A stretch of DNA of 64,000 nucleotides. Source: Trichoplax adhaerens (taxonomy: Eukaryota; Animalia; Placozoa). Position 1 is the first letter of the stretch. Each line of letters starts with the position of its first letter. Under the pieces are notes generated by a model, which was not told where the DNA came from, did no database searches, and saw only the letters and a list, made by a program, of their open reading frames with translations. A program made the position numbers and the translations under genes. Shown here in pieces: positions 55,001 to 62,749 of this stretch. Where the stretch lies: assembly GCF_000150275.1 (NCBI RefSeq), contig NW_002060943.1, positions 1,664,832 through 1,728,831 of the forward strand, read 5' to 3'.

Positions 55001-55898
55001 TAAAGAAATAGACGACAAATACTCATATAGCCTAACATGTTAAATTCGGAATAGTACGTAGCGCAGAAAGTACTAGGAATAGAAATTCGGCAGATATTTC
55101 ACGATACAGTCATGTCATTTTTACTCGATGATTGGGTACAATGCCATCGACCATTCACATTGTCGCGAGTACCAGAGAACATCAAATTAAATAAAATCTT
55201 TACTAAATACCTAAACTTTTTTAACTATCAGATCTTCGAATTCATAGACCTGTTAAAAAATTCTAAAAATGTTTGATACTTTGTGATAAACATATAGTTT
55301 AAAAACATTTTAGAGAGCTATTTTTATATTGGATATTTTGCGTAAAATCGTAATACTGCCTCTTTTAGTTTGCAATTATTTGGATAGAATATAATCTTCA
55401 GTATACCAACAGCAATGGATCTTGTCGAATATGTTTATCAGATTACGTTTGTCAGAAAGTATTTTCAGTCCGAAATTACTCCTATAATCAGATTATAACC
55501 TCAGTATCAACAGTCGTCCGTCGTAATAGATAAAAATCGCTATCTGGTGATACCCTTAAAGCGCATTTAAACATACATCAAATTGTTACGGCAATTGCAG
55601 TGTATCTCGTGTCACATCATATCTCACCGTCAGGCATCCTCTAGGGAACATTTACGGGAAGGAATCCACAATCGTTACAGATGATAAAGAAAGAAAAATA
55701 ATCTTTCATTAATACCATAGACGGAGCATGACAATAATTTCATATAAAAGTACGCATGATATTATACTAATAAGCGTAGATAATAACAAGGTTGCATAGA
55801 AGCTAACTAAAGTTAACTTGAACCCGTAAAGTGAAATAGTACCTGATACAATGGCGTGAACGAAATTTAAATAAAAACACAAATACAATCATTACTTA

Positions 55899-58800
55899 TT
55901 AATATTCGATAAATACCTGAATAGGCACGAATGTCGGTGGTACACCAGAAGGTGTAATAAAATTAGCAGTACCAACCGTAGCCGGGACCGTTGGCATGTG
56001 TGTGTGAGGGACTATGGTAAAAGATAATTTTGCTGCTATTAAATTGCTGTACTAATGACGATACTTTAAGAGTTTAAGATAGCAATTGCTGACAAAAGGT
56101 AGATACCTATTGAATGCGTAATCAAATTAATAAACGGCGAAACTAAATAATTTACTACTTACTTGGCATTCCTGGTAACTGAGCCATGGGAGTAAAAAAT
56201 GGCGTAAATACTTGTTGCTGTTGCCAAGCTAAGGTATTTGGACTAACTGCTCCATTAAAATTATTTACGTTGACTCTTCTTTTAGGATGAAATGATTCAT
56301 TGACAAAGTTCTGAAATTAGGAAAAACTTGTCAATGGAAACTGCTTTGTAGCATGGTAATCTTTTATACTTAGATTAGCGTGTCAGTACATCAGTATTAT
56401 CCGGATAGATGATACTTTTCGTTAGAGGTAGATATTACTACGTAGTTTATTATTTATGGTCGAAAAAACTTGCTTTGTTGTATCTACACCATAAATTGAT
56501 AGATGTACTAATTCTGACTAATGTGAGGGTTGTACTATAACGTACACTATATTTCTCTGTAAAGGACCGATTGGCCTCATTTGTATATGATACGAAATAA
56601 TTACAACTCATTGTTAGATTATACTGATACAATGAATAGTGTACTGAATGCTATCATCAGATATTAGCATTATTACTGTTCGATCAATATAATTTATGAA
56701 CGAAGTATTCGTTAGTCTTTTTGACGAACATGTTCCGAGATTATAACTAAGTTGCAGACAAAAAACCTTATTGGTAGCCAGTATCGCGGATAAAAATATC
56801 ACAGGGTAGAGACTGCCACAAAATTTTTTGATTTAGATTAGTTTTATACATAATATAAGCAGCGTGTACCGTATCGTTATGCTCCAGCTTGCGTTTTCTG
56901 CCGTCAGTCTAATTAGTAACGGTAGCAAGCGTTAGGCAGCAGCAGTGGCATAGCATAAGAGTAGAAAGTTATTAAAGTGTTATAAAAATGTCTGAAAAAC
57001 GAAGCTGACAGCAAAGCTTAGTGTGATTCAACTGTCAAGCAATATATCACTGATTACATTAAAATAAATGCGTGAATATATTCTTAAATTCTATATCAGC
57101 GTATGTACTATGTGCTATTTAATGCGTGCTACCAGTCTAGTCGTCGTTCATTGTCAGTGATTCAGAGTCAATAAATATCGAAACTTTATTTCCATAATTG
57201 TTACTGAAAAGATTTCGTCGTTAATATCGTAAGGAGAAGAAGTGAAAGACGGGTTTTTATTATCAATTCTAAATAGTATGATGCCAAGTGTGAAAGTTGC
57301 CTGTTTAGGAATACAGTAGTTGTAAAAATTTAAGCTGTGATTCGCGAATACAGCGGATATGTACACTTATAGATGGCAGAAGAAATTATTAGATTCTGAC
57401 AGTACGGTATACGTAAATCTGTATGAAAACGTATACAAAAACAGGTAAAGCAAGTCTAGTTCAAAATACTTACAAGCAACACGCACTGACCTGATCTGTT
57501 ATTTGCTGTTGTTGCGGAGGTTGCTGTTCTAGTGTTGATTGCTGTTGTTGTTGTGGTTGAGGGAGAGGCTGTTGGACCGGCTGAGCTTGCTGTTGCTTTA
57601 CTCGTGTTAGTAGATGCGGAGGTGGATGAAAGTATCTGCATACATCGCGTTGGCACTTCCCTTTGATGTGATCCATGCATAATGTGACAGTGTTATCATA
57701 TTTATCGATAACAACATTAGTAGGAGGATGAGCGTAGCGACATTCATCTTCACCCCGTGAGCATGTGCCACGTCTGTACTGCCGACAAACCTAATTAATA
57801 AATTAATTATTACACTAGTCATGAAATGCATGATTTACGAAAGTAAAGGGTTTTATTATTCGCTGTATTTGATAATTTGAATTACCTCCATTCGGTCAAC
57901 TTTAGCAGGCTTCTTAGGCATAGAATTACCGATAGCATTGTTAATCAGTATCGGTTCTAGTGGAGCACTAGTTACATATTCCGGATATAATGCTGGAACT
58001 ATGCTAACAAAAGGTGCGCTCTAGAGAATTAGGCAAATATGCGTATATTAGGTACAACATACACTGTGCATGCATCGTTTATTTAATATATCTATATCTA
58101 GATATTTGAACATATGGCAGAAATCGATTATAGTGTATTCCTTCCTTAATATCTTAAATAAATTGTAGAACGAGACCGATGTGATATGTATGTATTCCGT
58201 TTGCAAATATTACAACATCTAGTAAATTTGTTGAAAAGCTCTTATATTCTACTTACTATTGGTTGCCCTACGAATGGTGGTCCAGTTGTAAGTAGCAGCT
58301 GTTGCTGCATCTGTCGTTGTTGCTGTTGCTGTTGCTGGTGTTGTTGTTGCTGTCTTAAGTTTAGTCTGCCGTTGTTTTCTAGTTGAATTTTTAAATGCTT
58401 CGGTGGATGAAAGTACTTGCAAACCTCACGATTACATCGATTCTAATTATGAATCACAATTAGGCGGTTTCGTTAACTAATACCGGCGTATTACATTTAA
58501 GACATGATTACAGATTGAATTTCCTTGTTTGTTTAAATTTATTAGCTATCATGTAGGATCCAATGAAACCGGCAGCATTTCCTACAGGTGCTATTCTTAA
58601 AGTGGCTATACAATGTACCTCTTTATAACACTACGACATACTGTACATTTTATTCTGTTACAGTGAATACATGTACAACGCAGTCAAGCTGATTGCGATA
58701 GTTGTTTAAAAGAATAGGCACCAGATGCTCTGATGTTATTGACTCAAAATCACAAGCATCAATATAACACATTATATTATCTCCTTCCATAACCTAACTA

Positions 58801-61661: not shown

Positions 61662-62749
61662 GATTGTTGTTCAAAATGGATCAACACTATCAACATGCAG
61701 AGGATAATGAATCTTAATAGTAAGAGAGAGCAGCGATGATTGTATTTACCGAATCAAGCTTATGCGTACGTAGTTGCTAGAGTGGTCGACAAGAGCGTTG
61801 AAATGGAAAAGAATAATCAAAAAATGTTATTCACCTTAAGGTTAAGAATCAATGTTGGGAATCGGCGATAATACAGTAGAAGGGGGAAAAAAAGAAAGGG
61901 GGAGCAAATCAGCAATAGCGTCTGTTACAGCGTAATTTTTGAAGAAAAGGGAATACAATATTGAAAATTGTAATTTAGCTGGGTTGTATATCGCTTGACT
62001 ACAACATCAAGTCAATGGAAGCTGTATTGGATCTTTCAATATATTAATAGTATATTGTCCAAATGAGAAGACAATAACCAAATTGAAATTAGTTTAATTG
62101 AATATTGCTTCGTTGCGGGAGGGGTGCAAATTGGAATACGGTTAAATAATCCTGGTCATACAACAATAGTATCAACAGGGTAAAAGGACCAGCTGGCTTA
62201 CAAGATATCCTTGCCGTATTGACGAAAAGGATGCAATACCAAATTGCCCAAAAAAGCAATGTCTACAATAAGCAATGACCTTAATTAAACAAGCAAAAGA
62301 AGCACAATTTGATACTATAGCATCGCAGTTGAATTTCAAAGTAAGGACTAGCCAGTGTGCTTGGCAAAGCAACAAGTCGTTCAATTCACCAACAAACAGT
62401 ATAGTCCAAAGTCAAAAGAAAGAACAAAAAAAAAAAATGCACTTTGCTTGAGTGAAAATGGTCAAAGTAAAATCAACCGCCAAGTACAAATAGTGTACTA
62501 CAATCTGTCAACAAAGTAAAAATAAATCAAGTCAAATGGATAATTTCCAAGGACTAAAGTCAAGTGGACCATTCGTCAAAGAAAAATGAGTGAAAAAATG
62601 CCAATTAAAAATGTTGCTCTTTCGTCTTTGGCGATATTCCCTTTTCTTAGCAATGCGGCGAAAAGCAGCAGCAGCGGAATCGGGACAGTGATAGTGTGAA
62701 CGCGTGCGTGTGCAGCCTACATAAGGTATTGTAAGGATTAGACGGCAGA

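Follow-up and report, generated by a model that had tools for sequence, protein, structure and literature searches.

A candidate KR-motif cassette micro-exon and its upstream YGCY cluster in the muscleblind gene of the placozoan Trichoplax adhaerens

The question raised by this locus is whether the self-regulating switch of muscleblind (MBNL) genes, in which the protein represses an exon encoding part of its own nuclear localisation signal (NLS), exists outside Bilateria. MBNL autoregulation through an NLS exon is central to the biology of myotonic dystrophy, and is usually described as a developmental timer of muscle and nerve tissue; in vertebrates the exon concerned, exon 5 of MBNL1, is reportedly an autoregulated NLS cassette, in work attributed to Gates in 2011 and to Kino in 2015. 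The window analysed here, a stretch of 64,000 nucleotides (nt) from Trichoplax adhaerens (contig NW_002060943.1 of assembly GCF_000150275.1, positions 1,664,832 to 1,728,831 of the forward strand), contains the MBNL gene of this placozoan, and a sequence-only reading of it had proposed that a 39-nt, phase-0/0 exon at 56908-56870 on the minus strand, preceded by seven YGCY motifs, is such a switch. That proposal is partly supported: the sequence observation at its core is confirmed on re-reading, the skipped messenger RNA (mRNA) and the use of the micro-exon donor are both found in RNA contigs, the encoded peptide resembles the KR-motif cassettes of other animals, and corals share the layout, with their cassette annotated as alternative.

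The host gene is, by its protein sequence, the Trichoplax MBNL orthologue, its assignment to MBNL being that of the earlier reading. In translation it runs on the minus strand from about 61661, its start codon, to about 55100, in a region of ~31-35% GC, and it encodes four zinc fingers in two tandem CCCH pairs with the LEV box and the spacing typical of MBNL. In a HMMER search with the single exon 57787-57491 as query, which recovered 987 MBNL relatives, the best match is TRIADDRAFT_4444 (P0001, a 247-residue partial protein of T. adhaerens), with 100% identity to the gene of the window, and the second-best named match is 'Muscleblind-like protein 3', a model from Trichoplax sp. H2 with MBNL Pfam domains. 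The gene is single-copy in the Trichoplax genome (assembly searched: 105.6 Mb in 1414 contigs).

The micro-exon occupies a slot between the exon of zinc finger 4 (ZnF4), which ends at 57491, and the PKRR exon, which starts at 56310, all three being in phase 0; its boundaries are TTAG|ACT at the acceptor and ACG|GTACAC at the donor. Its RKRK lies at 56899-56888 and the KRR of the next exon at 56283-56275, so that inclusion gives, in translation, the arrangement RKRK-x15-KRR that had been read from the sequence. The second KR motif stands early in the downstream exon (56289-56248), where it aligns with its vertebrate counterpart and with coral PFKKQTALE. The micro-exon has a GC content of 51% against 34% for the intron, and nowhere in the intron is GC higher than in the ~100 nt around it (~50%). 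The splice sites had been described as weak, and this applies to the donor, since GTACAC is weaker than the other donors of the gene (GTAAGT, GTCAGT and GTATTT), and not to the acceptor: pyrimidines make up 63% of the 30 nt before the micro-exon AG, against 50-67% at six RNA-confirmed acceptors of the same gene, and a weak pyrimidine tract was rejected as a special feature of this exon because it equals that of the constitutive acceptors. The open frame of the micro-exon alone proves nothing, because 28 frame-preserving AG..GT segments lie in the 1180-nt host intron; the case for it therefore rests on the profile score of the peptide, the RNA joint and the YGCY cluster.

For the profile, 22 KR cassettes from animals other than Trichoplax were used. 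The 11-mer that begins at the first codon of the micro-exon scores 10.1 bits on it. Among the 576 scored in the intron it comes first, with the runner-up at -0.5, and among the 56,685 over the six frames of the window it comes second; the GRKRKLE within it fits the KR consensus G-[KR]-K-R-[PA]-x-[DE]. In the alignment of database proteins downstream of ZnF4, many protostomes carry ..GKKRPRDPADD..PYKR.., and vertebrates appear in forms with and without exon 5 (the human ones are P0046 and P0067). The alignment with vertebrate exon 5 that the sequence-only reading had put forward is borne out, in that the KRxLE core is shared and the second basic motif falls in the next exon. Homology of the micro-exon peptide with the KR-motif cassette of other animals thus has statistical support at the level of sequence.

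Upstream of the micro-exon, YGCY motifs start at 56955, 56950, 56944, 56941, 56938, 56931 and 56927 (in order TGCT, TGCC, TGCT, TGCT, TGCC, CGCT and TGCT), seven in 32 nt, at 16-47 nt from the micro-exon AG. They enclose a candidate branch point, CTAAC at 56935-56931, with its A (56932) 23 nt away from the AG, and two further motifs overlap just past the donor, so that each of these elements is where the earlier reading had placed it. Neither strand of the window has a denser cluster; first-order Markov simulations of the window (n=300) reach a maximum of 5 YGCY per 32 nt, with none of the 300 reaching 6, and in a further 190 kb of the Trichoplax genome the sole cluster of at least 5 YGCY is a pure (TGC)n microsatellite. 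No stable RNA fold was found at 56850-56990 relative to shuffled sequences (z = 0.35), and a hairpin that presents or hides the motifs was rejected on this ground. Apart from this region, the second-densest YGCY cluster of the window lies at 62650-62690 (62676), on the MBNL sense strand, with 6 motifs in 32 nt (ccGCTGCTGCTGCTtttCGCCGC); it is ~1 kb upstream of the start codon, in the probable 5' untranslated region (UTR) or promoter region, and human MBNL1 is known to bind its own exon 1 / 5' UTR (PMC5389549).

The RNA evidence consists of the contigs of four runs (X6, X9, X11 and X14), assembled on a k=31 graph, a procedure in which minor variants are lost. The joint that skips the micro-exon, 57491/56310, is present in X11 and X14, runs of two studies, and each of these has a long mRNA contig with the joints 58257/58020, 57884/57788, 57491/56310, 56163/56011 and onward; because the long contigs carry the skip joint, the skipped form is taken to be the main mRNA in both. 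Use of the micro-exon donor is seen in X6, a total-RNA run recorded as random-primed RNA and derived from a slightly different strain, where 56870 is joined to 56310, both ends coinciding with the predicted GT and AG, with 559 nt removed and a depth of 8.75. The gap of this joint ends CT..AC on the plus strand, and the lengths on its sides (29+1 nt) are those expected of a k=31 graph and are the same as at the constitutive joints of the run. The same run also has an unspliced contig (56282-56899), and its contig 11 continues unbroken from 56870 to 57788, through 56908 and 57491, with the next intron upstream spliced out. Depth in X6 covers the whole host intron and is zero at 55641-55916 and 58443-58800; because these two other intronic stretches of MBNL have zero depth, the intron coverage is ascribed to slow or regulated splicing, or retention, selectively around the micro-exon, and DNA contamination was rejected as its source for the same reason. 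The host intron in X6 thus looks detained or slowly spliced, and reading through it would end the protein early. X9 has no joints, behaves like DNA or pre-mRNA, and is uninformative.

Outside placozoans, the cassette is best documented in anthozoans, in which pairs of NCBI isoforms differing solely by this exon are found in Exaiptasia, Stylophora, Pocillopora, Montipora, Actinia and Orbicella (for example XP_020631502 vs XP_020631525 in Orbicella and XP_020903399 vs XP_020903406 in Exaiptasia), where it is annotated only as isoforms X1/X3/X4. The anthozoan cassette encodes 14-15 residues, (L)(E/D)GSRKR(P/A)(H/Y)(D/E)....(E)L, in 42-45 nt, between the Q-rich linker after ZnF4 and GEPFKKQ..ALE. 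A metagenome scan with the single Trichoplax exon as query found no relative; one that used the anthozoan cassette alignment yielded 80 MBNL loci. One of these, L026, matches the MBNL of Orbicella faveolata exon by exon at 89-100% identity, most exons at 100%, and L020 is a related coral locus. In both, a 45-nt AG|...|GTACTT exon is found ~1.8 kb past the ZnF4 exon and ~2.1 kb before the TFGEPFKKQ exon, and the corresponding coral cassette is present in isoform X1 and absent from isoform X4. In L026 and L020 the 100 nt preceding the cassette hold eight YGCY, a density that on the sense strand of the 20-kb coral locus is reached only in windows abutting the cassette, and a ~250-nt block (L026:11829-12078 vs L020:11703-11952), spanning ~175 nt upstream to ~30 nt downstream of the cassette, is 98-100% identical, against ~61% for the introns overall. 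The presence of a YGCY cluster in cnidarians, which had been set as a check on the original proposal, is thereby established, and the coral block is, from its conservation, an invertebrate counterpart of the ultraconserved element at vertebrate MBNL1 exon 5. Three loci of unidentified animals (L058, L009 and L019) also have a KR cassette with their strongest YGCY cluster within ~150 nt upstream, up to 13 motifs in 100 nt in L058, and a GTAC-type donor is common to Trichoplax, coral and L009.

In its sequence, size, phase and position the anthozoan cassette is the nearest known to the Trichoplax micro-exon (DGSRKRAHE vs DGRKRKLEH). Both have a weak GTAC-type donor (GTACTT in coral, GTACAC in Trichoplax), a (CTG)3-containing YGCY cluster within 100 nt upstream and a following exon that carries another basic motif (PFKKQ..ALE in coral). 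The differences concern intron length (~2 kb in coral, ~0.6 kb in Trichoplax) and documentation, since coral has annotated inclusion isoforms and a flank conserved at 98-100% in two species, and Trichoplax has neither yet. The likeness to human MBNL1 exon 5 lies in the slot, which follows the ZnF4 linker and precedes the exon of the second basic motif, in the small, frame-preserving size, in the KRxLE core (KRPLE in human, KRKLE in Trichoplax) and in the multiple YGCY between the branch-point region and the 3' splice site; the skipped form, moreover, is the main one in mature human tissue and is also the main one in Trichoplax. In contrast, the Trichoplax exon has 39 nt and the human one 54 nt, the linker between the basic motifs has 15 and 19 residues, respectively, and in Trichoplax the YGCY cluster contains the candidate branch point, at 23 nt from the AG, whereas the human branch point is far-distal, at -141, with a 90-nt response region. 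The vertebrate exon has an ultraconserved element, and none is demonstrable for placozoans. With mbl-1 exon 7 of Caenorhabditis elegans the micro-exon shares a single MBNL gene and the provision of the first of two KR motifs, although the worm exon codes 75 residues and the micro-exon 13.

The functions of these exons in other systems give the model for the Trichoplax one. Repression of human exon 5 by MBNL1 acts through YGCY motifs located after the branch point and ahead of a weak 3' splice site (PMC7901844). The KR-motif exon of C. elegans is repressed by MBL-1 itself, whose localisation is nuclear with two KR motifs and diffuse with one (PMC10773944, PMC13191465); FOX-1, among other RNA-binding proteins, co-regulates this equivalent exon (PMC10773944). 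Oddo et al. found that a Trichoplax MBNL complementary DNA (cDNA) represses a human MBNL1 exon 5 minigene, with the protein reaching 60-80% of human activity across reporters and binding CUG-repeat foci in mammalian cells (PMC5041496). Its product was nuclear and cytoplasmic in mouse embryonic fibroblasts (MEFs) and HeLa cells, the exon content of the cDNA being unstated (PMC5041496), and no cDNA sequence was found in the supplements of that paper. A distribution over both compartments is also that of one-motif forms in C. elegans (PMC13191465). For the autoregulatory cassette, the broadest published scope is Bilateria, given by Verbeeren et al. 2023, who claim nothing for non-bilaterians (PMC10773944), and a literature search on MBNL in cnidarians, Nematostella and placozoans found, among the papers searched, no description of a KR cassette outside Bilateria.

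On this model, skipping joins ...ITDQ to the downstream exon and gives a protein with one basic motif, the main form in whole-animal mRNA, and inclusion would add 13 residues and complete RKRK-x15-KRR, a bipartite-type NLS by which the protein would be retained in the nucleus. Surrounding the likely branch point, the seven YGCY would be binding sites of MBNL itself; at high nuclear levels MBNL would occupy them, recognition of the branch point and of the 3' splice site would be blocked, and the exon would be skipped, with negative feedback on nuclear MBNL as the predicted outcome. The skipped mRNA and the donor are observed in Trichoplax; it is inferred that the micro-exon acceptor is used, that Trichoplax MBNL binds the cluster and represses the exon, and that localisation changes, the repression and localisation steps by analogy with the published human, C. 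elegans and heterologous-cell work.

Several points weigh against such a switch. The acceptor joint 57491/56908 is in none of the contigs of the four runs; the donor-spliced molecules of X6 may mostly still hold the upstream intron, and the inclusion level could be very low. Both public gene models, XP_002108472 of T. adhaerens and RDD39259 of Trichoplax sp. H2, omit the micro-exon. YGCY is short and degenerate and is usable by other factors, and L061 is a KR-cassette locus without a YGCY cluster. Single-nucleotide polymorphisms between strains number 0 in the 133-nt core and 7 in the rest of the intron, but with ~0.9 expected in the core this carries no statistical weight; the placozoan comparison is one of Trichoplax strains. 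As to the choice between inclusion and skipping on which the earlier reading was to be judged, the skip joint is found in two runs, the donor joint in one and 57491/56908 in none of the four, and full inclusion of the micro-exon in mRNA is unproven. The missing acceptor joint is itself weak evidence, because contig building removes minor cassette variants. One alternative explanation is that the exon is vestigial or barely used, an ancestral KR cassette with a working donor that is almost never joined upstream and provides no localisation switch, the observed molecules being dead-end or slow intermediates. The absence of the acceptor joint, the unbroken X6 contig across 56908 and 57491, the gene models that skip the exon and the weak GTACAC would agree with this; nevertheless, bubble-popping in assembly drops just those minor isoforms, and an open frame, an undamaged RKRK, a GC island of 51% and the exceptional YGCY cluster are all kept in an intron of 34% GC, a combination that a decaying exon is unlikely to retain, which makes this explanation rather unlikely. 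The same X6 contig, continuous over 56870-57788 with the neighbouring intron spliced, together with the 56870/56310 joint of the same run, can also be taken as intron retention with a distal donor, in which the ZnF4 exon reads through 57490-56870 and is then spliced from 56870 to 56310. After six intronic codons (VSACCL) the frame meets a stop, which would in that case yield a truncated four-finger protein, or else an RNA detained in the nucleus or targeted to nonsense-mediated decay (NMD), and the YGCY cluster would tune the level of MBNL, not its localisation. Retention leaves unexplained the 39 nt in frame, the KR match from the first codon and an AG that has a candidate branch point at -23; the coral counterpart is an annotated frame-preserving cassette, and De Bruijn contigs are no proof that retention and the donor joint share one molecule, so that this course is quite improbable.

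Control of a real alternative cassette by something other than MBNL, with the pyrimidine- and GC-rich block serving either another factor (for example a CELF, PTB or Rbfox-type protein) or as splice-site context for the exon, would fit the degeneracy of YGCY, the L061 locus and the co-regulation of the C. elegans equivalent by FOX-1 and others (PMC10773944), but the placozoan, the coral and three further metazoan loci all have YGCY clusters right upstream of the cassette, there is hardly any variation in the coral block, and the human exon is repressed by Trichoplax MBNL, which works via YGCY-type sites (PMC5041496); non-MBNL control is accordingly viewed as unlikely. A resemblance by chance, in which noisy splicing uses a cryptic donor beside a fortuitous GC-rich patch, could appeal to the 28 in-frame AG..GT segments of the host intron and to the detection of the donor joint in one run only. 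It would, however, need independent low-probability events at one spot, namely a peptide ranking 1 of 576, a YGCY cluster beyond all 300 simulations and matched once, by a microsatellite, in the further 190 kb, and a donor used as predicted, with the same layout in corals, and it is exceedingly improbable. The reading of 56908-56870 as the placozoan orthologue of the KR-motif cassette and an MBNL-repressed NLS switch is, taken as a whole, narrowly favoured. That the segment is a genuine, homologous exon is quite likely; granted this, self-repression mediated by the YGCY block is somewhat probable; and granted self-repression in turn, an increase of nuclear retention on inclusion is reasonably probable.

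Table 1. Positions in the window of the micro-exon, its flanking exons and intron halves, and the associated YGCY motifs
Feature	Position	Strand	Evidence
Upstream constitutive exon, zinc fingers 3 and 4 and Q-rich linker	57491..57788	-	RNA joints 57788/57884 and 56310/57491; translation; TRIADDRAFT_4444 100%
Host intron, upstream half, 582 nt	56909..57490	-	unspliced in total-RNA run X6
Cluster of seven YGCY, candidate MBNL binding platform	56924..56955	-	densest in the window; simulations
Cassette micro-exon, 39 nt, 13 residues, first KR motif	56870..56908	-	donor joint in X6; KR profile (KR1); GC; slot as in anthozoan cassette
Two overlapping YGCY, CGCT (56864) and TGCT (56861), 6-12 nt past the donor	56858..56864	-	sequence
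Host intron, downstream half, 559 nt, GT..AG	56311..56869	-	separately removed in X6 (joint 56310/56870)
Downstream constitutive exon, second basic motif	56163..56310	-	joints 56310/57491 and 56011/56163; translation; vertebrate and anthozoan proteins

The upstream constitutive exon ends in ...QQQITDQ, in phase 0, at the donor CAG|GTCAGT. Elsewhere in the gene, both public Trichoplax models look faulty: RDD39259 (Trichoplax sp. H2, P0151) is without the 186-nt exon 58257-58442 on the minus strand, which is the second half of zinc finger 2 and is present in the RNA contigs of three runs, and XP_002108472 (T. adhaerens, P0001) is a partial model in which 15 residues are intron read through. At the 3' end of the coding region, the 65-nt exon 55640-55576 (minus strand) brings the stop codon (..RMPDGEI, then stop) in X11 and X14; X6 has a 12-13-nt short form of it, AGGATGCCTGAC, with the donor GTGAGA, joined to 55482/55481 and ending ..RMPDGVISD before the stop, which constitutes a second tiny alternative splice of the gene. 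As to the family, several MBNL-type CCCH fingers each occur in proteins of Mesostigma (a green alga), a liverwort, a fern and a lycophyte (P0003, P0184, P0033 and P0193), which match the Trichoplax MBNL query at E = 1e-40 to 1e-55, and because these algal and land-plant proteins match, the finger type is not confined to animals.

With respect to the age of the circuit, the claim of the sequence-only reading that the loop predates bilaterians gains from the coral cassette, its YGCY and its second motif. Since corals share the layout, the alternative cassette and a near-invariant YGCY flank, a pre-bilaterian origin has support independent of Trichoplax, and on the coral evidence it is likely whatever the inclusion level in the placozoan; the self-regulating MBNL switch probably predates bilaterians. 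P0005, a protein with an identifier in the EukProt style ('scpid') that is presumably from the sponge Sycon ciliatum, has after zinc finger 4 the sequence LLNARKRPSSTPADVLSNDYRRPTMPY (..ARKRPSS..x..YRRP..), with two basic motifs of the same spacing logic, and its sequence hints at a motif pair older than the placozoan-cnidarian-bilaterian ancestor. The fuller proposition, of a loop ancestral to that ancestor and perhaps older still (P0005), which runs without muscles or neurons and whose coral version is guarded by the near-invariant block, stands evenly between acceptance and doubt.

The case described here would extend an established mechanism to a lineage from which it had not been known. 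The Trichoplax case is directly testable, with one MBNL gene, short introns, a cDNA already cloned and existing MBNL-null cell lines reconstituted with it (PMC5041496). If the interpretation is true, the origin of the circuit would move before the cnidarian-bilaterian split, the circuit would be present in an animal that has neither muscle nor neurons, and its first role would have been a general control of nuclear versus cytoplasmic MBNL activity.

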